Shown in pieces: positions 2,076 to 56,564 of a stretch of DNA of 64,000 nucleotides. A model generated the notes under the pieces. That model was given only the letters and a program-made list of their open reading frames with translations. It was not told where the DNA came from and did not search any database. Both the position numbers and the translations under genes were made by a program. The DNA comes from Schmidtea polychroa (taxonomy: Eukaryota): the NCBI GenBank assembly GCA_044892525.1, contig CM097886.1:13578001-13642000 (forward strand), read 5' to 3'. Positions within the stretch are counted from its first letter, which is position 1. Each line of letters begins with the position of its first letter.

Positions 2076-5000
2076 ATGTATGACAGCAGCGACTCATTTG
2101 AAGGCAATTGGTGGACTAGAGCGACTGCATCAAAACAAAACAATGCAGGGTGTGCAAACGAAAGAAGTAAAATGGCAACTTGTCTTATTCTCGTCACGAC
2201 GTTACTGGATGTTGCAATTGTTCTTGCAGTCGCCGCAATTGAATATTTCTTTAGGTAAGTTTTTGTTCGTTTATCTATACGGATGTTCAGGTCGAACCGT
2301 TTTTACCTATCAAGCCCCACTCAATCCCAATTGANNNNNNNNNNNNNNNNNNNNNNNNNNNNNNNNNNNNNNNNNNNNNNNNNNNNNNNNNNNNNNNNNN
2401 NNNNNNNNNNNNNNNNNNNNNNNNNNNNNNNNNNNNNNNNNNNNNNNNNNNNNNNNNNNNNNNNNNNNNNNNNNNNNNNNNNNNNNNNNNNNNNNNNNNN
2501 NNNNNNNNNNNNNNNNNNNNNNNNNNNNNNNNNNNNNNNNNNNNNNNNNNNNNNNNNNNNNNNNNNNNNNNNNNNNNNCCTCATATACCTGTAAATATAA
2601 AATTTTCTGGCCCATAATTTGTGTGCTAAAGATTCAGTAAATGTATCGCCTCATATGTCAGTCGTGAGAGATCTGTTGATTAAAGAGCAACTAGTTGGTA
2701 ACGGCGAGAAATTCGCCATCAAGAGACACACATTCCTCTTAGTTGCTGATTTACATCTTGGACAAATATAATAGAGTCTCGCCCATTATTGGGATTCATT
2801 AAATAAATTATGTGTCCTAATCAATCACTACACCACGTAGTCTTCATTGCCCATCATTAACCTAATTATAAAACATTGTAATAAGTCTTACATAGGATAT
2901 TCAATGGCAACTTACCGTTCATTATCTCATGCCTATTAATAGAATCCATTATTATGATTATATAATTATGGTTATTATTTATCCCAAAGATGAAAATGCA
3001 TTCCATTCAAACAATTTCACCAAACTCTCAATAGCAATGGACATATGGAGTCATTATAGTTAATATTTCCCCATATGAGCCATCTGCCCCAGGAGGAATA
3101 TTTATAATTTATGCCAGTTTTCCATTTGAAATTTAAAAACAAAAAAAATTTAATGAAAAAAATCTTTTGAAAACGAATTTATTTCATTATGCAATTTATC
3201 GATTATTTGCGTCATTAGATTACGGTGGATTGTACCCTACTGAAGCTTTTAGGGCCCATAATTAGGTAAAATGTTTGACCAAGCACTTCCATACNNNNNN
3301 NNNNNNNNNNNNNNNNNNNNNNNNNNNNNNNNNNNNNNNNNNNNNNNNNNNNNNNNNNNNNNNNNNNNNNNNNNNNNNNNNNNNNNNNNNNNNNNNNNNN
3401 NNNNNNNNNNNNNNNNNNNNNNNNNNNNNNNNNNNNCACTATTTAATTTTGAACAAATCCAAGTTTATAAGCCAACAAAGCATGCTCTCGAGTTTGACCA
3501 TTTTTTGAAACACCAGCTTCAAATTCCCCAATAAGCATCAAACCCTTTCCTTTTCGAAAAAGGGCTTTTGCATTCACCGGTTGCTTTGCAGGCACCGTTT
3601 TACTAAATTTCATCACAGAAGGTCCCCGGTTTAATTTCAAATTACAATGAGTCATATTGAAATATAATTTCACAACATGACTCCATCGAATATTCTCCTC
3701 GTCATCAGTAAGTAACGGCATAGCGTATAATATATCCAATCCTCTTAAATATTCATTGAGCGCAATTCCATAACGTTTGTTTCGAAAATCAGCATTTGCA
3801 TCATTTCCACATTGAACAACTAATTTAATAATTTCATAAAGGCAATTCGAATCTGTTCATCTTCAAATTTTTAAACATAAACACATGTTGACATTTTCTA
3901 AGATACAAACAAAAAACAAGAATGTCAATAAATTCCAAAAATGCCGATTCAATTTCGAAAACCAATTATACACACTTCCAAAATTCGACCAATTCGAAAA
4001 AATAAAAAACTACCCTGTCCAAGTTTGTGTGCATACACATATAAGAAAAGCCATTCCAACAACAACGCGCACACAGACGCGAGCTCAAAATCGGCCGAAA
4101 CAATTATTATTATACGATTTATCATTCAATTTCAACATTTTATCATTCAATTTCAACATTGTAATCAGAAACAATATTTATAAAAGAATAACAACAAAAT
4201 ATTTATTGATGAATATAGAGTAATTCCGCCGCACAGTTAATGATATTTCGAATTATATGCCTAAAATATCCTGCGCAATCATTTGCTGTAACGTTATCAA
4301 CTTCTATTAACATTAATTCAGATAAATTACCAGTTTCAGCTAATCGCAATCTAGAACGAATCCCATTTTTGATTTTTGAAAACGCATTTTCGATAGGATT
4401 CAGCATATAAGAATAAGGCGCAAGAAATTTAAAATTATAATTAAATTCTGATGTAATTCTTAGATGAATACATAGTTCATTAATAAAGCCAGAGAAAATA
4501 TCTACATTGACAGTGGAATGAGAGATTGTTTTACAATATAACATCCAACTAAGGGACATGCTTGCAATTAGCGAAATTGAACGTCCCCGAATAGTTGGGA
4601 TTTGTACATAGCTGCGAGTTCCTTGTTTAGATCTTGAGTAAGATATTTCAAGATGCGAATTGAATGAAGACTCATCAATGAATATTACATTGGACATTTC
4701 ATTATTGAAATAGTTATTGAACCAGAGAGCATATTCTTTTCGTGCCGAGATTTTTTCTGGCATATTGACTCTATCCAATTCTCGATGAGACAATTTCATA
4801 GTTATTTTTAAATTTTTTAAGGCTCTATTTATGGTCGGAATTGAAATGGAAAAACCATTGCCTTCCTCCTGTTCAAGGCATGCTTTAATCTCTTTTAATG
4901 TAAATTGAGGATTGATGGAGACGATGTTATCAATTTTTACTTGTATTCTTTCCGTATGAACTGTTTTCTTACTTCCACTCCTTTTAGTATGAACGATGAC

Positions 5001-9426: not shown

Positions 9427-9459
<33 letters not shown>

Positions 9460-10106
9460 GCTACTATTAATCTTAATATTATAAATACTATTTTTGCTAA
9501 TTGTTATAAAGAAAAGAAAAAAATATTTTTTTATTTACCAAGATTATATTTCTGAATGAGAATATTTTGTAAATTTGAAATTTAATTTCATAATTTTTAC
9601 AAAAATAAAATTTTGACTCAAAATTATCATTTTCATTTGAAATGTGTTGTTGATTTAAAAATATTTTAAATTTTTAAATTAAAAAAATTAACCAAGCCTT
9701 TTATTAGTAAATCATTTTTAAATAAATATATTTTAAATATCGAAATTTTAATAAATAGTTTTTGAAATATTTTATTCAAAGCTGAAAATTTGTTAGGAAA
9801 TTTTACAATATTTCTTTAAATAAATACTTGGAATTATGTCGTTAAATTTTGAACTGGATTTAAAAAAAAATTTAGAAGATTTGTTAGTAGCTTCTAATAT
9901 TCACAACAAATTCTAATAATAATATTTTTATTGATTTGTATTTTTAGTCTATCAACCTTCTAATCTTTTAAACAAATTAACTTATAATAAAACTGAACAA
10001 ATAAACGGACAAAATATTAAAATAAATACAAAAGGAAAATAAATTTACAAAAATATGGAACATAAGTGTGGAACACGCTCATATAATGTTCATCCGGTAA
10101 ACTCAA

Positions 10107-15022: not shown

Positions 15023-18000
15023 TCATCCGATCAACCCGCCAGAATTCAATTGCTTTATCAAGCTCTTGGTAACATTGATTTTGAAATTCAAATGCTGGCA
15101 TTGGGATCTGAATTCTGATTCCTGCTGATCGGTGAGTGAGATCCAAGCAACCTGTAACTTAGGGAAATGATCGCCCAACAATAGCTGGCAGATCTGACAA
15201 CTGTCGACATTATCTAAATGGGTCAAGTCCAGCCACGACAAATTGCGAAGGCGGCTAAGATTGTTCAGAATTGAGTTGTTATCACCTACGAGTCCCGAAC
15301 ACGAGCTGAGCACCAAATGAGTCAAAGTAGCTGAGAATCTGGCCAGAACTGGCAGCCATAAATCAGTTACGTGACGACAGTTAGTAAGGATGATTGTTTC
15401 CAAGGGCAGATGAGACAGACTGGCTGCAAGGCTGGCCGTCATTTGCGGGTGGCAGAAAATGCCATCGAGCTGACGGATGAATTTGCAATGGGATATTGCC
15501 ATGGTAACGTGAACGAGATTTGCGTTGGAGACACCTCTGACGTTGATCGAGGAAAGTTTGGGGAACGAATCACAAAGCGATTTGACATGGAGTTGGGTTT
15601 CCCATGTGAGTTTGTGACAATGGCTGATGTCAAGATGACGCAACTCGGGCAAACGGGGGAATGATAAGGGATTCGCGACATGGCTAGATGAAAGGTTGAG
15701 TAGCTCGAGATGAGTGAACATACCGATACAGGTCATGCACTCATCTGAAATAGTCAACCCGGACAAGTCGACAGAACGCAGGGCGGGAACGCAAGAGACT
15801 GGATCGTTCTGGGAGCTCAGGTGAAGGTAAATATGCTTGAGGCCGACATTTGTAACTGATGTATATTTGATAGCAAGCACCGAGAGGGAGGGCAGAGCAC
15901 CCACAACCTGGATACCCCAATCATTGATTTTTGCGCAATAATTCAGACTGAGCCGTCTCAGTCGAGTTAGATAGCGCAAATGCCAGAGGCCTTCATTACT
16001 GAATGTGTGTTCCTCATTGTCAAGGATCAACTCCTCCATGGTTGGGCACTTACTGACACATTTCAGCACTTCATTGGTGGCCAATATTGAGTACGAGAGG
16101 TCAAGACATGTCAAATTGGAACCGGCAGCACAGAAATATGAGAGCAGGCTTGGAGTAAGCAATTTGTCATCAAGGAGGAATTTGATGAAAATCTGTTGGA
16201 TGTTATTCGGTAGCTTCTTCATTGACCTGCACGCTGTGTTGCTATGGAGACGGAGTAATCGATAAATCTCTTTGAAACAAAGATGGAGCAGCGATTTCGG
16301 ACGCCTATCAAGACGAGGAGTCGAGTTGATATCAAGAGCACGAATGTCCAATAACCTGTCAGCCCACAATTCTCCAACCGACCTATTGTCATGACAACCA
16401 GGTAATGGAATGCCTATCCCAGAGAATGGTTGAGTTATGCCATTTGCCGTCAACTCCAAATCAAGCGCCCTAACTGATTCAAATTGCAAAATTGGCAATG
16501 AGAATGAGCCTATATATGGGGCTTGTACTGAGTCTCCACTGTTATTATTACCATAGTTACTGGATCCAATAACGGCATCATTTGGCCATTGCTCATCTAA
16601 CCGATAGCAACTCAATGAAACTCGGTCACAATTCATATCTAATTCTGTCAATGTATGTAAATAATCCTCTGGATAAGAGAACATTTGCCGGGGCTCTTGT
16701 CGTAGCAATGTAAATGTTCCCACATCCATTTGGCTGATATGGGCAAATTCAATGACAATTTTCTCTAGGGTTGTCTTATTAGGATCACAAGGGATCCGAT
16801 AATAAATATTGCTAGAGGAGCTGTCAATTATATCTATCTGGACTAGGCAACTGTCGCTTGTCGCTATTGCTGTAGCATTATCATCATCAATTATCGCTGA
16901 TGATTTGATTGGTCGATGGTGTAATTGTGATGATTTGATTGGTTGGTGGTGTAATTGTGATGGGCAACTGTCGCTTGTCTCTATTGCTGTAGCATTATCA
17001 TCATCAATTATCGCTGATGATTTGATTGGTCGATGGTTTAATTGCGATGATTTGATTGGTTGGCGTTGTAATTGTGATGGGCAACTGTCACTTGTCTCTA
17101 TTGCTGTAGCATTAGAATGGTTATCATCAATTGTGATTGGTTGATGATGTAATTGTGATGACCTGATTGGTTGGCGTTGTAATTGCGATGGGCAGCTGAT
17201 AATGGCAAGCAAATGAGCACTGGGATATAACCCAATGCTACTAATGCTCCTATCAAGATAATATTCCCCAACAATCCGGATTGATTGAGCACCTGACGGC
17301 ATTACTAAATGCCAATGCAATTGCTGGAATTGCTCAATCAAATCATTCAAGCTTGTATCAGATGTAATTGCCAGTTGGTTAGCATGCGATTTACTCACCC
17401 GATTGCTTGAATAGCGGCACCGATGGAACCAACATATCAAATCACGGATTGTAGAGATCGCAGCATGGAACGGATGCGTGAATGTGATCGGTTCAAGGGA
17501 GGGATCAAGCAAGTCCATAACCTGATAACAAATAGATAGATAGATAGATATATGATGGTGATGATGATCACCTGTATCTTTGTTATCGCATTGATATTTA
17601 TCTCAGCTGGCATTGCTCCTGCTGAATGATCGCTATTGGCATTGATCGATAAGCTAGATGCAGATATTGTCGATGAGATTGCCTCAGTAACGCCTATATC
17701 ATTCATTGGGGGTCTGAATGGCAACAGTTTATCATGCCGATCAATGCCACTCATTCAGTAGCGCTCAATCAGTTGCTTATCCCTCCCTATTGGGGCCCGG
17801 TGGGGTCCAGTGGGTGGGGAGGGCATCAAGGCACCTGATTGAGCGCTCATATTATCATTGCAACTAACCCATTTATAATAGATCGCCGTTGCTGACCTTT
17901 ATCTTCCATACGTCTCATGGGATTGATGCTGCTAACATTCGGTTCCATGCTCCTCTCATCGCGTTCACTTGTACTTATCCATTGGAGCTGTGATGGAACT

Positions 18001-18679: not shown

Positions 18680-20418
18680 TGTTAATGAAGTTATAATTGA
18701 GTATTATCAAGTTTTTTACAAAGTTGACAAATATGAATTCTAAACTACTACTTATGAATTTATATGTGAAATCTTCAGAGAACCTATAATAAGTTAACAG
18801 AAAATTTCAATATTTGACTATAATATTAATTGGCATTTAAATCCTAAAACTTAATTATCAATGAAAATTCAGCAATTAAAACAAAAGTCATATGATTACA
18901 ATTGAATGATATTTGTGTTTTTCATTTCTCTAATGGTTTTTTATTTATTTTTATATTAAAACTTTGCTGATTTAAAGGGATTTAAAAACATTGTTATAAG
19001 AATTTTAAGTCTTTTATTAAGCCTTTTTCAAGTGAATTATGTAATATTTTAAATAATTTAAATTATATTATTTTAAATAAATTATTTTTTAATTAAACTT
19101 TATTTTAGATATTGACGTGGACGTTGCTAATGATGATAGCATTTAATAAAAATTAAAAAAATCTTACTTTCTGGTTTCTTATGTTTGCATACTGAGGTGT
19201 GTTGGTTAAATGCCTTAGGGTCGCATATATAAATCCCATCAATTCTTCCTAAAACGTCTGCATGATTATTAAACTTTTTATCATCCGTATACCTATGACA
19301 ACTATCATGTTGGACCAACTATCAATGAGCATGTGAGCTCACTTACTAGAACTTCTCCTCTTAACATTTTCACTTTCGGGATCATGACTACCAATAGAAG
19401 TTATTTAGGCTCGTTTCATACTATATTATTTTTTGGAATTTTTGATCTTTTAAGGGGCTTTTTAACATGCACTTTATTTTAGAATATTAAGCAATGTTTC
19501 CATCTTTCAAACTTTGAGAAGTTATTTACCATTTTTTGATAATTTACTTTCGGCTCTCTTAAATATTCAGTTAAAGATTTCAAACATTTTCTCGTCTTTA
19601 CTAATTTAGCAACATGTCCATAATGTTACTTTAAGAAAAATAACAAACATTTAACCATATTTCTAATTTTGCTAATTTATTCTAGAATCTAATGTAGTTA
19701 AATTACTTTATATAGAATAATAATTTGCGATTCCATGAGCATGAAATTAATTCATAAAACTCACGTAATTAAAACTAGTACAACTAGTACCACTCTTTGA
19801 AATCAGAGTTTGGATAATTCTTCAAGTTTGAGACTATTAAAACACACATACTCAAGTACTGTCTGATTTTGTCATTAAATTTTAAATTAAATTAATTTTC
19901 TTCTAAAATTTTTACTTTCAGCACATGGTGGCTACATTTGTGATTTATCACTCTAAGCATTAGTAAATATCGCGCATTTTATTGATTGTTTAAACAATCA
20001 GATAAATTATTGAAATTTTTTATCTTTTCGTTTTTTCTTTAGTGATTTTCATGAAAAGATTATCATAATATTGCCCAGAAGCCAAATAATTTATTAAACA
20101 TGATTTAAGAAACTTAGGAAAACTGGAAGGAAATGCATAACACAGCATATAAAACGCATAAAGTCGGATTAAAAAATTAATGGAAAAACACCATTTAAAC
20201 ATTAAATAAACAGAAACTTAAATAAAAATTAAAACGCAAATAAATAAAATTATAGAAACACATTAAGTAACAAAAAGAAAAACATTCTAAGTGCATGATA
20301 AAAATTATAGCATGGATTAAAAATTAAATAAAATCTTTTAAAATAAATAAGTTAATTAAATTTAATAAAAAATACATTTGTTTTAACGAAATAAAATAAA
20401 TAAAGAAATTCTGGGATC

Positions 20419-20467
20419 AGCCAATGAGGTTAGACATTTCCTGATTGGTCCGAATTTCATATAAATA
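20419..20467 (+). promoter_or_regulatory. Candidate Pol II promoter: two NF-Y CCAAT boxes and a TATA box
   Basis: cagccaatga (20419), ctgattggtc (20441, reverse CCAAT) and catataaata (about 20458). Downstream are a GT-AG intron-like segment (20640-20764) and an exon-like block (20765-20996) with no intact ORF. Confidence 0.5.
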
Positions 20468-21204
20468 AAGCGTTCCACCATCGAAAGATCAACTGTTGTA
20501 CTGAGTTTGAAAAATAAAGAAAATACTTTTTCAACTTTACAGTTGAAAAACACGCTTCCTTTTTTTAACTTGCATCTATTATTGAAACAAACTTGATTTC
20601 ATTCAATTGGCAGTTTATTCATATTACGTAATCAACCAGGTAATTTTTAGGTTATGTTTAACATTTGAGTAGTAATATGCAATCATCGTAATTTTCTCTT
20701 TTATGCTAAATAAAAATTTGTTAATTTTGTGTTTTCTATTTCGTTCATGTATTTTTTGAGACAGCCCAAAATTTCTATCAGCCCACTGGTAGGTGGAGAG
20801 AACCGCAATAATCTTTCAGGTTCTTGAACAACTTCAGAACCAGATGTAGAGCAAAAACCCAACATAATTCGAGGAATTGGTTCTCGATAGCTGGTAGGGA
20901 ATTGGACTTCCCATGTGCCACGATATGAGAAAGCGGGATAGCACTGATATAGTTTGAAGGTCTTACCAGACAGGTCGAGTTGTTGACCAAGGAAAGGTAA
21001 AATTGGAGGTGATTATTTCTTACGAAATAATTTTATAGCTTTTTTAGACGGTTTAATAATGTATTGATGATTGCGATTAATTAACTTTAATAATATTAAT
21101 TTTAATTGCTTGGAAATAAACTAGCAATAGACTATTTTCGAATGATCTTAGTTTTTCTTAATTGAATTGTTAATCTAATGTCTGCATTGTATGTAAGTTA
21201 CTTA

Positions 21205-21525
21205 CTCGTCCAGTCTTGAAACACGGACCAAGGAGTTTTATATGATCGGGAGTCAAAGAGCCTTACGAAACCCCAAGGCGCAATTAATGTAAAGGTTTAC
21301 TTTCGTAAACTAAGATGTGACCTCGTGGCAGCACAGAGTGCAACATCAATCCGTCTGAAGATGTTCGCATCTGGGCGGAGTTTGAGCGATCATATAGGGG
21401 CCCGAAATTTGTTGAACTATGGTTGTGCAGGTTGAAGCCACGGGAAACTCTGGTGGCGGACCGCAGCGGTTCTGACGCGCAAATCGATCGTCGGACATGA
21501 GTATAGGGGCGAAAGACTAATTGAA
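21205..21525 (+). rRNA. Isolated fragment (pseudogene) of 28S/LSU rRNA, D3 region, about 320 bp
   Basis: Universal LSU motifs gtcttgaaacacggaccaaggag, gaactat, gaaactctggtgg and ggttctgacgcgcaaatcgatcgtcgga..tgagtataggggcgaaagactaattgaa. The helix tatatgatcg / cgatcatata is preserved. There is no flanking rDNA. Confidence 0.92.
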
Positions 21526-21529
21526 TTGT

Positions 21530-21995
21530 ACTAAACTTTATTTTCCGATTATTTAAAGGAAAAGTGATTTGATTCAAGTTTACTTTATGATTTACTTCTT
21601 TTTCTGAAAATCCTAATTTATGAGCTTCTTTAATACTATCAAAATCTACTTTAAAAGGAAAATATTTACAATTAATGTTCAAAGAATTTTCATCAATATA
21701 TATTAAATAAAATGGAGAGTCGTGACTGATTGCAAATTCATTTTTTTTCTTCGTTATAGTAAAAGTATTCATAACTTGTATGTAATAAAATTTTACTCTA
21801 TTTAACATTTAAATTATTGTAAAAAGGAAAATAATTATACACAAAGGTAAAATCCATGAGAGCCACTTTTCCTTCACCATCCAAGTAAACAGTATTTTGA
21901 AATTCGACATTAAATTTACTAGCTTCATTATTTGGATGAGTATAGGGACAACTATTAGAGATAACTTCTTTAACTTTGCTATTATAAAATTCTTT
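21530..21995 (-). mobile_element. Polinton/Maverick (adintovirus-type) minor capsid protein (penton) relic, one frameshift, truncated by the rRNA fragment
   Basis: The minus strand reads KEFY...ISNSCPYTHPNNEASKFNVEFQNTVYLDGEGKVALMDFTFVYNYFPF, matching the Polinton penton N-terminal pattern FY..LPSNSS...FP.N....F...L...I.L.G.WEVAL.EI.YP. After a 1-nt frameshift near 21800 it continues ...KVDFDSIKEAHKLGF (LA..LGF motif). Confidence 0.65.
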
Positions 21996-22097
21996 ACCTA
22001 AACCAAATATTTAAAAATTAATTAATTAAATTTATTTACCTAAATCGGTTTGTAAATTATGAGGATTGCCATTGCAAACGATTTGTCACAAAATGCC

Positions 22098-22206
22098 TCC
22101 CAAATTCAAAAATGGCGCTTGTTAGACTAACGCTGACATTGTGTCTAGAGAGGATCTTGGTAATTAGCATTCACCACTTTGGTACTTCGTAATTTGAATT
22201 TCCCGC
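22098..22206. promoter_or_regulatory. Cluster of promoter-type motifs (CHR/E2F-like and YY1-like)
   Basis: tcccaaattcaaa (22098), aaaatggcg (about 22108) and tttgaatttcccgc (22193), about 120-230 bp beyond the PIWI stop. Confidence 0.3.
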
Positions 22207-22329
22207 ACAATGGCCTAATAATAATAATAATAATAATAATAGAAATAACGGGCTTAAAAACTCTTAATAAAAAGAAACATTGAGAAAACACAATAAAAAC
22301 AAAAAATATTAATAAAATCCAAACATTTA

Positions 22330-24795
22330 TTACAAGTAAAAGAGTCTATTTCTAATTCTTTCATTAATGATAACTGGATTAGATCCTTTGTGTACCTTTC
22401 CAACTAACTCGGCCAATCTATGGGCATAATGCACTGGAACTGGAACTCGAATAGTCCCCATCCAATTGAAATACAAATGGGTCAGGGCATAAGTAATTCT
22501 TTGTAACTCATTCGGTGAGATAGGTTCCCTAGTTCCTTTCTTTGTAATCAAGCGAGTATCTTCGAGGACATTATAATTTGTTGGAGTTGCAGTTCCTCTA
22601 GTTGTTCTTTGTGACACTAAGAAAAATTCATAGAAATTTGGTTTGACAATTTCTTTATCAACAATAGTTCCAGGATTTGGATTATTTCCTCTGTTGAAAA
22701 GTTTCGTTCCAATTCTCTTCTTTACGATGACATAAATAATTTGAGGAGGAGGAAACCCGTTATTCTTGTATATATCCTCAATTAACTGCTTCATCGCTTC
22801 CACTTCAAAATTCTTGGTGAATTGAAGTTGGTTATCTCCAACCCCATCTCTATATACCAGTATTCTTTGAGGCAAAATGTCAAATTGTTTCTTGAAATAT
22901 CCTAATGCTGAACCGAAATTTTTGCCAAGAGTCTCATAGAATTCTTGACGCCCTTTTGGTGAATTGACAAAGCTCAAATATTGAGTGAAGGATTCGTTGG
23001 CGGAGAAAACAGAAGCTTGGATTGATTTCTTGCTAGACTTGTTGTGATATGTATCTATACCTACAATCATAGTTGGCCTTAACTTGAGTACGACAGTCCA
23101 AGGGTCATATCCAAATTTGGCAAAGATTTGCATCACGGTTTTACTTGAAACAACTTTTCTTCGTTTATCATTTCTATTAGTAGCATTTCGTGTTGTTACA
23201 CACTGCGTTAACAGGCCAGTACTCATGGTGAAGGATTTGACCTTGGCGTATATTCTGTCATCTGGCACGAATACCAAAGCCATTTTTGCACATTCACTGG
23301 CACTTGCTACTGAATCATTCAAGCATCTTTCCACCTCATTTGGACCGCATGTATTCACTCGTCCAACTCTTGCGCTAATTCGCATATTTTTCAATTCATA
23401 TTCCACATCATTGATGAAGTTCTTATATTGGAAATCATTCCTGTCAACAATCACAACGTCAATTTCGTGTTTACGATCCCGTTTGATATCGAATTGAACT
23501 CGCCCGAATTTCCAGTCGTCTGCCATTTTTTCATTAATTTTGCAACCGCCACTTATTACATCAGCTCCCGGTAACTCTCTGCCCTCCATTTCTAAGGGTC
23601 TGTTGTCAATCTTTAGTTGCCATTTATTACACATTCCGTTAGCTACATCATTGTTCTTTATCCAATTACAATAAGCAGGGATATCATCTAATCTTTCACG
23701 GGGTTCTCTTTTTAAAACACCCCCCAAATTCTTCTGCAAGTCCATATTTGATTTCTCTTGATCGGAAAATCCACATAAGAAACACAATTCACCTGGAATA
23801 TTCAGAGTCATATCTTTATCTTCACGAGCTTCACTTTCATTTTTTACTTCTTCACCTTTTCTTCTTTCTCGACGTACTAGTTTTTTTACTCGTGTAAGAA
23901 CAAAAGGTTGCTCTTTTTGTGATAACCGAATGTTATAACGTTCTTTAAAATATTCAGCATACGATAAAGTTCTACCGCTCATCTCAAACTTCTCGTCCAC
24001 ACTCATTTCTTTAATTTCACTTATGCGGTAGGTCTTGTTATTGTATTTAGTAATGATGTCTCTTCCTATCAGTTGATCAATGCTTCGCCTGTTATAAGAT
24101 TTCATAACAGAGTTATCGTTCAAAACTCGGTTAATACGTTCAATGTATAGAAGAGTAGTAAGTTCACCACTTGGTTTTGTTCCTCTTTGTAAAGTAGTTC
24201 CGAAACCTCCAAGAACTTTGAAACTATTAGTTTCAAAAAAGGTCGGGCCAGAATTACGTGGTACATCCTCTTTCTTGATGTTCGGACTTAAAAAATATCC
24301 CTTTCCAATTCTTTCCTGGCCCAACATGATTTGCAAGTTGTTTAATAATACATTAACCATTTGATAATATTCTTCAGTTTCTGGAAGGATGCTTGATACC
24401 AATCGTAATGTCATTCTTTTCTCACCGTCACTAAATTCTTGTATATCAGATTCACCATGCCATTTTCCACTGGTAAATAATCTCCTTCCATCAAAGCAAA
24501 AGGCTCCTGGTAATTGAAATTTCCTACAAATCCGGACAATGAATTGCAGTTTAACTTTAGGTGACATTCCGACTTGTGAGAAAGCCGAATCATACATCAT
24601 ATACTTTTCTGAGCGCATCACTGAAAATTGTGAAAAATTAGATTGCAATTTGACAACTCTTCCCAAATCTCCGAATTTCTCAACGAGTTCAGCTGGTTGC
24701 AAATTCGGTTCGACAACCCTAAATGTTCTCCTTAATCCACCTCGACTACCCATTCTAGCAGTCGCTTCAGCTCTATTTGATTCGTTTGTAGTCAT
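22330..24795 (-). CDS. piwi: PIWI-clade Argonaute, 821 aa, single exon
   Basis: PAZ (LIGRDIITKYNNKTYRI...YAEYFKERYNI...QPF), MID (YAKVK, TQCV, KTVMQIFAKFG..PW) and PIWI domain with D (IVGIDTYH), E (RQE), D (VYRDGVGD) and H (HYAHRLA). C-terminus NRLFYL. Confidence 0.97.
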   Translation of the reverse strand: MTTNESNRAEATARMGSRGGLRRTFRVVEPNLQPAELVEKFGDLGRVVKLQSNFSQFSVMRSEKYMMYDSAFSQVGMSPKVKLQFIVRICRKFQLPGAFCFDGRRLFTSGKWHGESDIQEFSDGEKRMTLRLVSSILPETEEYYQMVNVLLNNLQIMLGQERIGKGYFLSPNIKKEDVPRNSGPTFFETNSFKVLGGFGTTLQRGTKPSGELTTLLYIERINRVLNDNSVMKSYNRRSIDQLIGRDIITKYNNKTYRISEIKEMSVDEKFEMSGRTLSYAEYFKERYNIRLSQKEQPFVLTRVKKLVRRERRKGEEVKNESEAREDKDMTLNIPGELCFLCGFSDQEKSNMDLQKNLGGVLKREPRERLDDIPAYCNWIKNNDVANGMCNKWQLKIDNRPLEMEGRELPGADVISGGCKINEKMADDWKFGRVQFDIKRDRKHEIDVVIVDRNDFQYKNFINDVEYELKNMRISARVGRVNTCGPNEVERCLNDSVASASECAKMALVFVPDDRIYAKVKSFTMSTGLLTQCVTTRNATNRNDKRRKVVSSKTVMQIFAKFGYDPWTVVLKLRPTMIVGIDTYHNKSSKKSIQASVFSANESFTQYLSFVNSPKGRQEFYETLGKNFGSALGYFKKQFDILPQRILVYRDGVGDNQLQFTKNFEVEAMKQLIEDIYKNNGFPPPQIIYVIVKKRIGTKLFNRGNNPNPGTIVDKEIVKPNFYEFFLVSQRTTRGTATPTNYNVLEDTRLITKKGTREPISPNELQRITYALTHLYFNWMGTIRVPVPVHYAHRLAELVGKVHKGSNPVIINERIRNRLFYL

Positions 24796-25116
24796 TTGTA
24801 AAACTAAAAATATAAATAATATATTTACTGAATTTAAACAAATTAATTTAAATATTTGTTTATATTAATAAACTTTGAAAATATTTTTACTATTAATTAT
24901 TTTCAATAAAATTTAAAATTGAAATTATTTTTTTAAATTATTAGTGAAATTTTTTAATTAATTTAAATTAATTCAATTCTTTGATAATTTAATAATCGCG
25001 ATGTTTAAATTACATTTTTGCTTTTATTTTGATATTTTAATCTAGATAAATTAAAAAAGTAATTAATAGTTGCAAATCAGTTAAATTTTATAATTATTTT
25101 AAATTTTTAAAAGTTA

Positions 25117-25709
25117 AAAATTTATAAGTGTCTTTAAGCAAAAAATTAATATGTAAACTTTATTTGTAATGATAAAAACCGAAATATTAATTATTTAATC
25201 AAAATGTTATATTAAATATTTTATAATTAAAAAAAGTTTAAAAAAATTTATGAAAAAAAAATTAAATTAATTTATTTAAATTTACTTCATAAAAATGCTT
25301 TATTGTTCAAATATGTAAAAGTTTATTTTTATTATTGTTAAGAAGTGACAATGATAACAAATATTATTCTCCAAGATAAATAACAAATATTATTCTCCAA
25401 GACATGCTATTATATTGCTATTCATTGCATAATATCTAAAAATGGAATATATTTTATTAGTAATTATTGATATAGAATACTTGCAAACACACACATACAT
25501 AAAAATTTATAAGTGTCTTTAAGCAAAAAATTAATATGTAAACTTTATTTTTAATTATAAAAACCGAAATATTAATTATTTAATCAAAATGTTATATTAA
25601 ATATTTTATAATTAAAAAAAGTTTTAAAAAATTTATGAAAAAAAAAATTAAATAGATTATTGTTCAAATATGTAAAAGTTTATTTTTATTATTGTTAAGA
25701 AGTGACAAT
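25117..25709. repeat. Direct duplication of about 210-235 bp (25117-25352 and 25501-25709) upstream of PIWI
   Basis: Both copies start aaaatttataagtgtctttaagc and end ttaagaagtgacaat. The spacer carries a short duplication taacaaatattattctccaaga. Confidence 0.85.
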
Positions 25710-27562: not shown

Positions 27563-30529
27563 AATTAATTAATTAATTAACATTTTCTGTTTTCATACAT
27601 TTGAATGTTTTTCGACCCTTCTAACCATTTTCTGATAAATCCCTAACCATCATCTTGTTGACCATTAGCTAATCTATACCTGTCCCGTTTTTCCTATTCG
27701 ATTTCGATGATTTTTCCATTTATTGATTTTTCTCGGATTTCCGGATTCTTGCCTTTCGTAATTGCTTTTGGCATTTTCTAATACTGTTTCCATCACACTT
27801 TCCTTTACTATTGATTCTGTGCGCGATCCCGCTTTTATTTGTCTTTTTTCTTCGCTTACTTTCTATTTGAATTATTATCCTGAATTTTATTTAAATTTTT
27901 AATTTTAATTTACAGACCTCAACAATAATAAAATAATAATAATAATCAAAATAATAATTACAATAGTAATAATAATTCAAAATCCAAGTACTCGCAGCAA
28001 TGAAGTCCTTACAACCAACAAATTATTCTTCAAAGTATTTTATCAAATGATTTTTAAATTAATTTTTTTATTTGTCTTCAAAAATATATTTAAATACAAT
28101 CAGTTGAAAAACACTTCCTAGATGTCTAAATTTAACAAAAATGATGATTTTCGTCAAAAATAAATAATTGTCAACCATTTTAAAACACCACATGGAATTG
28201 AAAATAATTTAAATAAAATTGCAATGAAAGACTATTGAATTCTAATTCTAATTTATAAAAATTTCGAACCCAATTCAAATACGGTAACCCATATTTTTAA
28301 ACTTGCTTTGATTATATGAGATTCTTTATGAGATTCTGTTTATTCTAAACAAATGATATAGAGAAATGCCTAGCAAATTTTACTAACTGTATAATACATT
28401 TCGAAACTTAGAGGGTTAATGAATATCTTTCATTATATTAATAAAATTACAAAGGTTAAAAGTTTTACAATATTTACAAACTTAAAATAAATATTTAGAT
28501 AATAATTGCTTTATTCATGTCGGGCATTATCGCATATTTATTTTTTAAACTAATAACTTTCTTTATTTTTTATTGTTATTGTTTGAATAATTACCAAATT
28601 TATATCAAGATATTTTTTCAACATAATCATTATTTCAAAATTTAACTTTTAAATTAAAGTTAATTGTTTAAATACAATTTTTAATGTTATTTTAATTGAA
28701 AATGTATAGTTGTATATAATATGCTATCACTCGGTTAATAGTAACATTTACAGATGGAGAGGAAAATTTCTGAAAATTCTGAAGGAAATTTACAAGGTAA
28801 ATAAAACATTTTTATTTTCATTTGCATCTAATAATAACTTATAAACTAACTAGTTTTAGTTTTCATAACCTGCAAATAATTGAAAAGTATTTTAACATTT
28901 CTTATTAATTCCACTTTTTTCAACTAATTTATAAATTGAACTTATTTAAAAGTGATTAAATTCGTTAATATTTCAATTTTTTGTTCATATATGAGTAAAA
29001 TAGAACTAAATTAGGACATGTTTTAGCAATAATTGTTTTAGACTTTATTTAATATTTTTCAATTCTGTCAGATTAATAATTTATCAAGTTAATGATTATT
29101 GTATATATTTAATTTTTGTCAAAGCTTTATTAATAAACAAGAGGTAATTTGATTCTTGTTCATTGCTGTAACAATATTTCGTTTAACTCTTCTATATTTT
29201 CTGCTTGAAGTATTGCCATAGAATCTCTTGGTGTGCATCTGATATAAGTTTGCAAATTGCTATTTCCAATTCATTTCTCGATGGTAAATATTAGGAATCT
29301 ATCTCATGTTATGATCGCTATTTATGATCGCCTATTTCTATTACACGTATAATAGATGCGTTGCACATGTAAACCGTGCTTGGTCTGTGTGTTGCACCAT
29401 TAGCATTTGTTATTGTGATTTTCACGGTTCGCATGATCAACTGTTGGAGCATTTAATGCTTGTAATGTGTTCCGAGATCGATACAATTGTGCTATGTGAC
29501 GGGTGAATGTTGTTCCGGGACAGGATTAAGCTTGTTTGTGTTGTGAATGCTTCAGATGGTAATTAATCAATATTTCCCGTGCGTTGCCGTGCCATTTCTC
29601 ATTAATTTGGCTACGGATAACTTTGTGCCGATGAGAGCCGATTGATATTATTAGTTGGTAACGGTGAATTTTCAGATAGGATGGATGTCAAAAGGGATAA
29701 TCGGTTAGAGTGAGATGGGGCGGGACGGGAGGGCGAGAGGTTAGCTGTGACCAAATGAAGCGCAGATGGATAAATTGGCCTCCTATAACAATCAGATAGA
29801 TAAAATCCCCCGGAACTGATATTAGTTGCGATGGTCACTCACCCTGGAATGCGTTTGTGTGTGTTAATGCAGTTCATTGGTGGGATTTGGATAACTATTT
29901 CAGCGCTATAATAAACTAATTAGCAATGCAAATGGGCCAGAATTTACCATAGTTACCTTTTAGGCAAATATGCACAAGCTGAAACAAGTTTATCTGGTAA
30001 ACAGGCAACATTAAATGCTCCCTATTGACAATCCTTAGCCCTTCATCCTTGTATCCAGGCATATATATTCATCACTTGTTACATTTCTTGATATTCAGCT
30101 TATCTTCCCTTTCAGCTGAGATCTGTTAATGCAAGATTTATATAATTTAATCTCGTTCACCCCCAGCCGTTCCGATTGTACCTGTACTCTCCTTCCGTTA
30201 GCCTTTGTCCGTAAGCACGCATTCAAATGCCTGTCAAATCTACCTTGATCAATGATAACAACAAAGATCGATATTCAATAATAACAATTTCCAATCGAAT
30301 TGCGATCCGCTAAATCAACTAATCCGAATACAAGTGAAATAAAAAAAATTTTTAAATTTTTATAATTATTTTTATGTTGTTGCTAAAGTTAAAAATTAAC
30401 ATTCAATTCATTTTACACCTTCATAATGATCAATGTTCCCCTCTGCTGGCACCTTGGTGTCGATACTAATTAGTAAGGCAGTCCCTTTTGTACGTTACTT
30501 ATACCGATTGGTCAAGCATGTTCAATATG

Positions 30530-30962: not shown

Positions 30963-33900
30963 ATGAATTTCTATCAGATATTTTCTCATTCAGGATCAAG
31001 CTTTGGGAATTTGTCAAGGAAGCTGAATAATGATCGGGAGGACGGGAGCAGTGAGGAGGAGGAATCATTTAAGAGTTGCGCTGAGTTGATTGGTGTACCT
31101 CATGAGAAGTGTGTAAATGAAGAGGAAGAAGAAAAAAAACCGGAAGAGGATAATGGTGGGCCCCCGGAAGCCATGGCAACAACAATTGCATATCCGCCTG
31201 ATGCGAGTGATGATTCAGATAATACATTCAGTGAGAATGAATCAGAGGAAATCTATTACAGCGAGATAGAGAACAATGAGAACGACAGCGATATCAGTAA
31301 CCCTGGTAACGAGAATATTTCCACCAATCCCAGTGAGATCGAAATATCCTTCCAGCGAGAATTGCTTAATTATCTCGGATCATTTTTCAACGTTGAATCG
31401 CGATACCGCGTGCGGGAGAACCAATCAACTGTCAATGTCACCGAGGAACAGCTGGGCGAGTACGAGAGGCTACGGAAAAAGGTGAACAAGAACCTGAAAG
31501 TGTTAGGCATTGGTAACAGCAAAGATTTGGCAAGCAGCGAGCAAAACGTGGCCAGGAATCTTTATTACTTGTTGGCTGCCAGGGAGCGTGGGGATTGGAC
31601 TAGTTGCCGCCGGTACTCGCGGGTTGTTCCGATGTGGTCGTTTGAGAGACGTGGGAAAGTGGCAACTGGTGGGACAGTAGCATCGGTGAGGAGGGTGGCT
31701 CAATCTGATGCCGTGGAAATGGACGAGGCTGAAAGACTCGGTGAAGAATCAGCGGTTGCCATGGATACCGAACCGATATCGGAACAAGCCGGCAAGGGGA
31801 CAGGGTCTCCTGACCAGACAACCAATTGCAATGATAACTCGGAATCAGTGGCAGCAACTATCGATAGGAAGCAGCGAAATAAATTGACACCCGAGATTGG
31901 CCAATCAGCGCAGCGCATTCGGGGGGAAGTGGGGAACAAGAGAAAACGACTGGAAAGCGAGATCAAGGAAGAGGAGGACGCAGAACTCGATGAAGAATCA
32001 GAGAAGATGGTGGAAGTGTTGACGTGTGAGCGGGTGCAACGGAACGGTGCCTGGGACATCAGGAGTGCCGTTTATGGCAGCCGATGGTCAGTCCGTCGGT
32101 TGGGGTTGGAAGCGCGGTTCAATGCGCACGAAGGTTGCGTGAATGCCCTCGATTTCAGCAGCAGTGGCAACTGGATTGCCAGCGGCAGTGATGATCGGCA
32201 CATCGTCGTTACCGATTGGCAACAGAAGGCCCAATTATCCCGATTCAAGGTCGGGCACTCTAGCAACATATTCCAAGTGCGGTTCCTGCCCGGTAGCAAC
32301 GACCTTGAGCTAGTATCATGCAGCCGGGACTCAACTGTCCGCTACGCCGCCCTCTCCTCCACAGGCCAGAATCAATACAGCCGCCTGTTGACCCGCCACA
32401 AGGACAGTTGCCACAAAATGGATGTTCCTATTGACCAGCCCTGCCTGGTGATCAGCGCTGGTGAGGACTGTCGCGTACTCGGGTCCGATGTCCGAGCGCC
32501 ATACACAGTCAATAAGGTCTGCACGGTCGATAAGGTTCCCCTGTACACGATCTCCTGTAACCCGATACGGAGCCAGGAGTTCGCGGTGGCTGGCAAGGAC
32601 AGTCGGGTATATATCTATGACCGCAGGAAATCCAATGAGCCGTTGCATCATTTGTGCCCAGAGAATTTATCCACCAAATCACATAGCACCTATCACGTGA
32701 CATCGGTGGCCTATAGCAAGAATGGCGAGTCTGTATTGGCCTCCTACAATGATGATGATATTTACCTACTATCGGTTTGGCCTAGATCCGCTGAACCAGT
32801 CGCACGCCATCGCTATCAGGGCCATCGGAATGTCCAAACGGTCACCGGAGTGTCATTCTATGGGCCTCAGGATGAGTACGTTGTCAGTGGCAGCAATGAT
32901 GGGCACGTGTTGCTATGGGAGCGCGAGAGTGAGGCATTGGTCAACTGGTTTCGTGCTGATGAGAACGAGGTTGTCAATGTATTGGAGCCTCATCCATTCA
33001 TGCCGATACTGGCCACCGCAGGACTTGATCACGACATCAAGTTGTGGAGCATGTTGGCAGCAGATGGCCAACTAGATAGAGTGCTTCCATTGGACCAGCC
33101 GTTGTTGGAGCGGGACGCAGAGACATCAAGGATCGATTACGCGTGGAGGAAACTGGATGAGGAAGTTGGTATTGCTGTTGAGGATAGCGCTTGCAATGTG
33201 CCGTTCAATTTGCGCAATCTGAAAGTGGTGAGATCAAACATTTCCATGTAGACATTCCCTCTGACAATTGGCTTTATTCTAGATCACAGCGCTCAATTGG
33301 AAGATGCGAGATGAATCCTATCCATATTCGATCGATAACAATCTTGATAATTTGGTAAGATGATGTGCTGTATCATTTCATGTATATTTCATGTATATAT
33401 TCACGATCTCGTGTTAGCTTTTTGGTTCCATTTTTGGTTACCTAGGCCCTGGAACAACTCTATCTACCGTTGGGGGATTCTATCGATAATATAATTTGCT
33501 AATATATCCATTATTCGTTTCCTTACTGATTAACTTACAAATTTTCAGTCGCGCGTCGTGCCGGGTTATAAAGGTGCCTAATCAATAAATCGATAAGTTA
33601 GTTACCCAAAATAATATCAAAAGGTTTGCGGAAGGTCTGTCAGTGACATGGTGAACCCGTTAGTTATTATGATAAATTGCCCATAATGCGCTTCCCGCCA
33701 TGTATATACATATATTTTTTACCGGTTGCCATGGGCAACATGGCCTACCTACCCGCCCATCCGCTGGCAATCCCCTGGCCAATAAAGTCTCTAGCATTTG
33801 CTTATTATAATCACCATATGTTCGACATACTTAGTTGCTCGCTGACCTGCAGATATTCATGAGCCGCCGTCGTCATGGTGAAAATCAATTTCGAGGCATC

Positions 33901-38624: not shown

Positions 38625-40637
38625 CAGTGGCGGATTTAGATTTTGGTGCGTGGGGGCCGGGAAAATTTTCAGGGGGCGCCACAAATTATGAAGATGGTAC
38701 TACTTATTTTCGTGAGTATTGAGTGAATACTAATATTATTAAAAAGCATTATATTCAGTAAATTTATTCTAGTAAATTTATTGATGTAACAAACATACAA
38801 ATTTTTTTATTATTTAAATTGCTTCCTGCGTGATTTCATTGAAGCAAAACGATTTATAGTCGATTCAAGGTCAATGTTCTCAGCCAGTTCGCGTTCTATT
38901 GAAATTAATGCTAATCCAGACAGACGTTCGTTTGTCATTGTTGATCGCAAATAATTTTTGATGATTTTCAGTCTACTGAAACTTCTTTCAGCAGTAGCAG
39001 ATGTAACAGGAAGAGTCGAGTATATTTTATAGAGAATTGTCAAATTGGGAAGTCCTGGTGCCATCTGTTTTTCAACCAAGAAAGGCAGCACCTCTTTAAG
39101 TTGTAGTTCACAAGATGGTAATGGGCGTATTGATGCATACACGTATTTGAAAGTATCATATTCTAGGATTGCTTCTTCAATATTAATATCGTTTTTGTAA
39201 ATGTCGCATAAATTTTGAAAAGATTCTTTATTTTCTTCTGATATTTGTGATGGATCAAGACTGGAGAATAAAGCAACAGTGTTATGAAAATCATTAAAAC
39301 GTTCATCTGGTTGTGTTACAAGTGTATCCAAGACATTGAAATACGTTTCACATTTGAAGCGTATAGTTGGATCATCAACCCATTCATCTCTGTTAAGTTC
39401 ACCTGCCATGCGTTTCCTTTTTGCAACTCGCTTTTCTTTAAATTCTGTTTCAACATCTAGTAAAGAACAATTTTTGATAATAAATGATTTTACAGCAACA
39501 TTTAGACTTTCAAAAGCTTTATCACTTCTCATATCAGCAAACTTATTTCTGACAACATAAATCAATTGTTTTGCAAACGCAATATCAATGTCCTTTTGTT
39601 GCAAATAGTTTGATAACACAAAGATATTATCTAACAGCTTTTGTAAAAATAGCATCAGAAAAACAAAAGAATATTTTGTTATCAAAATTGATAGTCCCAT
39701 AGCTTCTGCTCTGACACTTCCTTTGTGTTCTTTTGATTCCCCAAAATTTATATCTTCCAGAGTAGATATAATAGCGGAGAATGATCCAACAACTGCATCA
39801 ACTGCATGCTTTCGGCTTGCCCATCTTGTATCAGAAAGTCGTTTTAGAGTATCTACTGTCGATTCATATCGAGACTTTTGATGTTCTTCGAGAATATGTA
39901 GTCGTGGTAGACTTGATGTAAGGAAAGTATACAACTTTTCTGTTGTACCAAAAAACAACTGAACATCACTGTTAAGAGACATTGCTTCAATAGTCACCAA
40001 ATTCAATGCATGAGAACAACAGTGAACAAAGATGGCATTTGGTGAAAGTGTCTTTATCTTAGTTTGAAGACCATTTTTAATCCCAGACATCACAGAGGCA
40101 CCATCATATGCCTGTCCCTACAAAGTGTAATTTTATATATATTATTTGCGGATATTTGCGGATATTTGCGGATAATTCTGAGGCAAGTGATTGAATTAGG
40201 TCATTTTGTACATCATGACATAAATAAAGTTCATTTTTCTTTTCAAACTTTAGATGATTATCCAAAGTGGAATCATATTTAGCCAATAAAAATAGCAATT
40301 CACGAAAATTTCCAGTATTACTACACCTGTCAAAGCCAGAATGTTCTCTGTGTCCTCTAAATGGAAAACCTTGTTTTGCTAAAAACAACGTTGCATCTAC
40401 CATTCGTTTCAAAACTTCGCTATTTTTTCTACTTGATAACGCTATGTAATATTATTAATATGATGCAGCATAACAGCTGGAGTTGCTTAAATCCAGTTGA
40501 TCTTTGTACACAGACAAAACTGTAATAAGAGAAAAAATTCATAAAATTATCTTTGGGGGGGGGGCGCCAATTAGGATTCAACAGGGGCGTGGAGGGGCGA
40601 CTCGCCCCCCCCACGGCTATAGCTAAATCCGCTACTG
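38625..40637 (-). mobile_element. hAT DNA transposon, 2013 bp, internally deleted (ZMYM1-like transposase)
   Basis: 15-bp TIRs CAGTGGCGGATTTAG / CTAAATCCGCTACTG (14/15 match) and a perfect 8-bp TSD ACAGCTGG. Transposase pieces LAKQGFPFRGHRE..GNFRELL, GQAYDGASVMSG, FVHCCSHALNL, TRWASR and PVTSATAERSFSRLKIIKNYLRSTMTNERL. The segment with the first catalytic Asp is missing at about 40110-40180. Confidence 0.95.

Positions 40638-45845: not shown

Positions 45846-56564
<10,719 letters not shown>

Follow-up and report, generated by a model that had tools for sequence, protein, structure and literature searches.

The DNA next to the 3' end of an intact PIWI gene was analysed in a 64,000-nucleotide stretch of the planarian Schmidtea polychroa (contig CM097886.1, positions 13,578,001 to 13,642,000), here called the window. 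The interval in question, at 20.4-22.3 kb of the window, lies between the 5' side of an open reading frame (ORF) for a leucine-rich repeat (LRR) protein and the PIWI gene. It contains a decayed piece of large-subunit (LSU) ribosomal RNA (rRNA) on the + strand, the broken remains of a Polinton/Maverick-type virus-like element on the - strand directly against it, and a cluster of promoter-like motifs on either side (Table 1). A preliminary description of this DNA had proposed that a + strand transcript of the interval serves as a source of guides, the PIWI-interacting RNAs (piRNAs), physically linked to the gene of its own effector. We find two unrelated and broken fossils, joined tail to tail through an 8-nt shared sequence, and most probably inert.

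An intact SMEDWI-2-type PIWI gene

By its PAZ and Piwi domains (Pfam, 2e-16 and 4e-64), its collinearity with relatives and the retention of the RDG and YAH catalytic-motif columns, the predicted product of the gene is a PIWI-clade Argonaute, and its nearest solved structures are PIWI-clade proteins. It is 86% identical to SMEDWI-2 of Schmidtea mediterranea at 100% coverage, with no higher identity in the protein collection, and 74% identical to Piwi of Dugesia japonica. The gene consists of one unbroken ORF, whereas other genes in the window, such as the CYFIP-type gene, are split into exons. The 500 nt upstream of it (24800-25300) are 84-94% AT. On its other side, between the stop codon and the nearer motif cluster, lies an (AAT)n microsatellite at 22216-22248; further (AAT)n microsatellites occur at 9427-9469, 27924-27972 and 53817-53858.

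A broken penton gene and a scrap of integrase

The virus-like relic as a whole extends over 21518-22073 on the - strand, about 0.55 kb. Its larger part is a fragment of a penton (minor or vertex capsid) gene, present as two stop-free stretches in different frames that were searched separately. Against 1.84 billion representative proteins, the longer piece produced a single match, a protein of 338 amino acids (aa), P0050 (phmmer, E 3e-17, 58% identity). P0050 has 83 relatives of ~340 aa, none of which is named or carries a Pfam domain, and a Pfam search with P0050 itself returned nothing. Both pieces match the 57-member family alignment with hhalign probabilities of 99.2% and 95.6%, and jointly they cover residues ~11-157 of the 338, the first ~45% of the gene. 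Among six contigs encoding members of the penton family (L001-L006), L001 is the closest relative, with 74% DNA identity to the fragment over 440 nt. The fragment falls short of a complete penton ORF: its start codon and initial codons are missing, it contains one frameshift, the 3' 54% of the gene is gone, and substitutions affect 1/3 covered family-invariant columns. Neither aligned piece has an internal stop codon.

The assignment to penton proteins comes from structure, since a search of the PDB with the family sequence profile gave nothing and fold comparison alone succeeded. We used an AlphaFold2 model of P0050, the nearest full-length relative and not the fragment (pLDDT 90.5). Foldseek against the PDB returned the mavirus penton 6g41 first (E 1e-8), followed by the Sputnik penton and the adenovirus penton base, and the matches among predicted viral structures (BFVD) included vertex or minor capsid proteins of virophages, MELD-virus, adintovirus and adomavirus. 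As modelled, P0050 has a penton-type jelly-roll fold. Pfam searches on all stop-free frames of 20.4-22.3 kb, those of the relic included, returned nothing; Pfam lacks a model for the penton family.

Directly upstream of the penton piece lies a scrap of an rve-type integrase gene, which the preliminary description had not mentioned. The scrap matches the catalytic-core region, residues ~119-145 of 341 in relatives, with a tblastn E value of 1e-5 when 0.5 kb is searched and of 0.004 when the search takes in the whole window; it includes 35 nt with 91% DNA identity to L004 and L005. Some 30-40 of the ~341 codons are left, with both sides cut and one short stop-bearing insertion. An intron reading of this insertion, just upstream of the penton piece, was considered and rejected, because its flanks correspond to an uninterrupted segment of the integrase in the relatives; a short insertion or duplication fits better.

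The gene neighbourhood of the relatives gives the relic its context. There, the penton gene sits after an rve integrase gene, often with a chromodomain, and is present as one to three tandem paralogues per contig; it is followed by a small ORF and then by the gene for a ~410-440-aa protein, which in L006 matches a double-jelly-roll domain. Close by are genes for a packaging ATPase of the A32-like type and for a protein-primed family-B polymerase (PolB). Judged by gene content and order, this layout is of the Polinton/Maverick/adintovirus type (compare PMC4028283, PMC8502044). Since the integrase precedes the penton gene or genes in L001, L003, L004 and L006, the relic keeps the native gene order. 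The tandem penton-like paralogues are located at 448-2467 in L001, where the two share 44% identity, at 4510-7531 in L004 and at 4128-7149 in L005. L001 and L002 have a planarian-like GC content of 27%, and L004 and L005 additionally encode Bcl-2-like and TBP-like proteins.

The relic is isolated in the window. Of the Polinton/Maverick core gene set only the penton fragment and the integrase scrap were matched; no other element gene (polymerase, ATPase, major capsid) and no further match to the penton family was found in the 64 kb. There is no second copy of the interval within the window, and a search for terminal repeats or a target-site duplication around the interval gave none that was acceptable, only short AT-rich pairs at chance level.

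A decayed rRNA fragment with eight nucleotides shared at the junction

The rRNA fragment is 323 nt long and aligns to ~295 positions (~644-938 of 3401) of the Rfam model RF02543. Scanning 3 kb gave it 159 bits (E 3e-40) and scanning 0.6 kb gave it 174 bits (E 4e-45), both above the gathering threshold of 50 bits; its bounds are those of the confidently aligned part, and AT-rich flanks of low posterior probability were not counted. This is not a full-length, structurally intact LSU rRNA gene. In the last ~130 aligned nt, about 8-9 highly conserved (upper-case) consensus positions are changed, and many consensus base pairs of the fragment are broken, so the piece is a pseudogene fragment and not functional rDNA. 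Rfam scans of 18 kb and 64 kb miss the fragment even at the E-value threshold, a filter effect. Because long scans overlook a known fragment, the window may contain further rRNA scraps that escaped detection. Abundant rRNA-derived sense small RNAs have been described in SMEDWI-1 (PMC10954484), with which reads over the fragment are easily confused.

The rRNA alignment reaches as far as 21525, similarity to the penton gene of L001 extends down to 21518, and the two fossils meet 3' end to 3' end. The eight nucleotides at the junction match the rRNA consensus at 7/8 positions and L001 at 8/8, from which we infer that the pieces were joined by microhomology-mediated, non-homologous repair. Misassembly commonly arises at rRNA and repeats, and the junction might be an artefact of joining unrelated reads. 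We nevertheless consider such a chimera extremely unlikely: the rRNA piece is altered at highly conserved positions and its pairs are broken, hence it is not functional rDNA that was pulled in, and an assembler would hardly be misled by a shared stretch of 8 nt, a length that is usual in microhomology repair. The shared sequence and the decay of the rRNA piece together argue that the join is real.

Three claims of the preliminary description were borne out by these analyses. The sense LSU rRNA fragment, put there at 320 bp, corresponds to the Rfam match, which is far beyond chance; the Polinton-type penton relic, said to abut the rRNA in antisense orientation to the promoter motifs, is upheld by sequence homology and by the predicted penton-like fold of P0050; and the PIWI gene said to converge with the + strand is full-length, with its domains present and its - strand ORF ending at 22330.

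Promoter-like motifs and an exon-like block

The motif cluster on the far side of the rRNA fragment contains a CCAAT box at 20421, an inverted CCAAT box 23 nt later at 20444 and TATAAA at 20460. Each CCAAT box conforms to the extended NF-Y consensus. From the spacing of the cluster, a candidate + strand start would lie near 20490. The first ~150 nt past this implied start are without ATG, a GT is found at 20641, and + strand AATAAA hexamers precede the relic at 20513, 20709 and 21115 and recur within it. Between 20300-20399 and 20400-20499 the AT fraction goes down from 0.90 to 0.62. Under a loose definition, CCAAT/CCAAT/TATA clusters occur once in the window against 0.79 expected, and since this is the chance expectation, the motifs alone prove no promoter. 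The cluster could serve as the promoter of some short RNA, non-coding or pseudogene-like, or could be without promoter activity. Within the LRR ORF, TGATTGGTY repeats are found at 16906-17164, mostly 30 nt apart, following the LRR coding repeat, so CCAAT-like strings arise for unrelated reasons in the window.

In the GC-richer, exon-like block that follows, all + frames are closed. The block has no relative in Pfam, the PDB, the protein database or viral contigs and no other copy in the window, and its RNA folding z-scores are unremarkable (-1.0 for the + strand and -2.4 for the - strand). Antisense to it runs a stop-free frame of 103 codons (20704-21012, -), with which searches of Pfam, the PDB, 5.8 billion proteins (word search) and IMG/VR found nothing. 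The frame was rejected as coding, as a stop-free run of this kind is of about chance length in a 42% GC patch.

The second motif cluster is situated between the relic and the PIWI stop codon. Its YY1-like and E2F-like motifs, motif matches only, have 1 and 2 occurrences in the 64-kb window. The AT fraction dips to 0.60-0.64 here, and this milder dip could equally mark a start on the - strand.

In these respects the preliminary description was only partly sustained. It had named a double-CCAAT plus TATA promoter, of which the motifs and their spacing are present at a frequency not above chance. Its exon-like block without an ORF does exist as a GC-richer stretch bounded by AG and GT and closed on the + strand, but was not shown to exceed chance, and its second promoter-motif cluster consists of motifs that are rare in the window yet are mere matches, again not shown to exceed chance.

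The surrounding window is AT-rich animal DNA, with 25-43% GC in 2-kb steps and six masked N runs. It is also transposon-rich, with one ORF that stems from a hAT-type transposase (38810-40093, -; dimerisation domain) and another from a DDE_3 (Tc1/mariner-type) transposase (4203-4799, -).

Table 1 Features of the interval and of the surrounding window
Feature	Position	Strand	Basis or remark
Promoter-like motif cluster: CCAAT, inverted CCAAT, TATAAATA	20419-20468	+	motif match only
GC-richer exon-like block	~20762-20998		AG and GT flank on + strand
Decayed large-subunit (28S-type) rRNA fragment	21205-21527	+	Rfam RF02543
Junction microhomology, 8 nt	21518-21525		fits both rRNA alignment and penton gene
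Penton (minor/vertex capsid) gene fragment, broken	21518-21962	-	homology, relatives' gene neighbourhood, relative's fold
rve-type integrase gene scrap	21951-22073	-	tblastn, DNA identity
Second motif cluster	22109-22206		YY1-like AAnATGGCG at 22109, E2F-like TTTCCCGC at 22199
SMEDWI-2-type PIWI gene, intact	22330-24795	-	single 821-codon ORF
LRR protein ORF	15023-17518	-	host gene
WD40 ORF	30963-33251	+	host gene
CYFIP-type gene, multi-exon	~49.8-52.7 kb		host gene

Origin and possible function of the interval

Taken together, we consider the interval to be inert debris, with a probability of roughly 0.7: the 3'-flanking DNA of a planarian smedwi-2-type gene in which two unrelated fossils lie tail to tail. 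The identity, orientation, breakage and isolation of the pieces are shown by the analysis. On the molecular level, microhomology-mediated end joining, or non-homologous repair of a similar kind, would have linked a decayed copy of 28S-type rRNA to the remnant of a Polinton/Maverick (adintovirus-like) element, and the joined pieces would now be decaying neutrally, with no protein encoded. Any transcript crossing them would bring them into the pervasive piRNA machinery of planarians merely as bystanders, like much of the genome, and the adjacency of the relic to PIWI would be coincidence. Nothing but adjacency links the interval to PIWI, and nothing we read in its sequence marks it as a dedicated small-RNA 'memory' locus. 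In S. mediterranea, 16,148 piRNA clusters make up 5.4% of the genome, weak piRNA production extends over most of the genome, and 95% of piRNAs are captured only if 82% of the genome is annotated; the median cluster is 1.9 kb, the strongest clusters are antisense to long terminal repeat (LTR) elements, and Polinton sequence is mainly sense, in pseudogene-like type B clusters (10.64898/2026.01.28.702291). These published base rates make a dedicated, PIWI-coupled locus unlikely.

Several observations weigh against inert debris. At ~1.9 kb, the interval is about as long as the usual unidirectional cluster of planarians, and relative to the + strand motifs the viral fragment lies in antisense. The geometry of that cluster is of the textbook kind, with the CCAAT boxes ~46 and ~69 nt and the TATA box ~30 nt upstream of the implied start, and a drop in AT of such a profile has been reported for planarian genic start sites (preprint 10.64898/2026.01.28.702291), which lends mild support to a start at this place. 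Finally, the penton pieces are stop-free over ~146 codons at 75% AT, suggesting that the relic is not very old or was spared by chance.

A rival reading is an ordinary piRNA locus: transcribed from one strand or the other, the interval would count among the thousands of small unidirectional clusters, 'Spread'-like and functionally untied to PIWI. Its scale and its unidirectional, pseudogene-like character fit the published planarian description, the + strand promoter-like cluster coincides with a dip in AT like that of start sites, and the - strand could be served by the second motif cluster with its milder dip. We regard this as unlikely, though still worth serious thought, given that clusters occupy only that small share of the genome and that three + strand AATAAA hexamers precede the relic; that the interval yields some piRNAs, penton-derived ones included, is doubtful to a similar degree. 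The penton fragment is antisense to the + strand motifs and sense to any - strand RNA, whether this arises by read-through from PIWI or from a start near 22.1-22.2 kb. Read-through, or a long PIWI 3' untranslated region, would carry - strand RNA past the stop codon, with sense orientation for the viral sequence and antisense for the rRNA piece, and overlaps with the ordinary piRNA locus just described. Mosquito clusters are driven by read-through from upstream genes (10.1101/2022.08.22.504762), and planarian type B clusters typically contain Polinton sequence in sense. Of the - strand AATAAA hexamers, the first coincides in part with the stop codon of PIWI, and others follow ~300 nt (at the edge of the relic) and ~790 nt downstream; but the hexamer at the stop codon could terminate the mRNA immediately, and we judge read-through improbable.

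Very improbable, in our view, is the guide source of the preliminary description, that is, a dedicated + strand precursor that starts at ~20490, gives rise to antisense guides against Maverick-like viruses and runs into the PIWI 3' end. It would draw on the antisense position of the relic relative to the motif cluster, on an arrangement that converges with PIWI, and on precedents from mosquitoes, where clusters are enriched in antisense viral fragments (PMC7161354, 10.1101/2022.08.22.504762, PMC7522710). Yet there is just one broken 0.55-kb fragment, and 31/466 of its 28-mers (~7%) are within 3 mismatches of the nearest known relative, although closer copies of the relic's element may be present in the same genome. 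The motif cluster is not above chance, several + strand AATAAA hexamers intervene between the putative start and the relic, Polinton sequence is mostly sense in planarian clusters, and piRNAs act in trans, so that linkage to PIWI brings no known advantage. It is hardly credible, then, that a ~1.9-kb unidirectional non-coding transcript yields antisense piRNAs in planarian stem cells and is kept beside a smedwi-2-type gene, and we would expect just as little that convergent transcription couples guide production to PIWI expression. If such a memory locus were real, virus-fragment piRNA immunity would be extended from mosquitoes to flatworm stem cells; no result here favours it over coincidence.

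As inert debris, the interval documents a Maverick/Polinton-type fragment in a planarian genome with its gene order kept, and the 8-nt junction shows how such fragments can be captured. It also provides a small, precisely mapped locus on which planarian small-RNA and RNA-seq data could tell whether DNA-virus fragments feed the somatic piRNA pathway. Endogenous Polinton-like fragments, dispersed rRNA pseudogene fragments and virus fragments in piRNA clusters are all of known kinds; what is new here is a further example of Polinton and rRNA fragments, with a tidy microhomology junction.

Comparison with known systems

The 'Seed' and 'Spread' clusters of planarians (10.64898/2026.01.28.702291) are compatible with the interval in size, one-strand character and pseudogene-like content. 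They were, however, defined by mapped piRNAs and chromatin marks in S. mediterranea, and the PIWI of the window is just 86% identical to SMEDWI-2; their Polinton sequence is mostly sense, while the relic is antisense to the + strand motifs. The unidirectional, flamenco-like clusters of Aedes (PMC7161354; 10.1101/2022.08.22.504762; PMC7522710) resemble the interval in having viral sequence antisense to a candidate promoter, an arrangement that in Aedes yields antiviral guides. Those clusters hold many RNA-virus fragments and are defined by small RNAs, in contrast to the one fragment of a DNA virus-like element described here.

With the pentons of Polinton/Maverick elements, adintoviruses and virophages (mavirus 6g41), the likeness lies in the predicted fold of the relic's nearest relative, P0050. 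In the related Polinton/Maverick elements the penton gene is placed between the rve-chromo integrase and the double-jelly-roll capsid gene, with ATPase and PolB nearby, and often has two or three tandem paralogues. The window, by contrast, holds one penton fragment, partial, once out of frame and without capsid, ATPase or polymerase genes.

Dispersed rRNA pseudogene fragments and 'filler' DNA are captured during non-homologous or microhomology-mediated repair of breaks. The interval follows the same pattern: here too, a decayed rRNA piece, whose donor may have been rDNA or an rRNA-derived cDNA, is joined to foreign DNA, tail to tail, via eight shared nucleotides.

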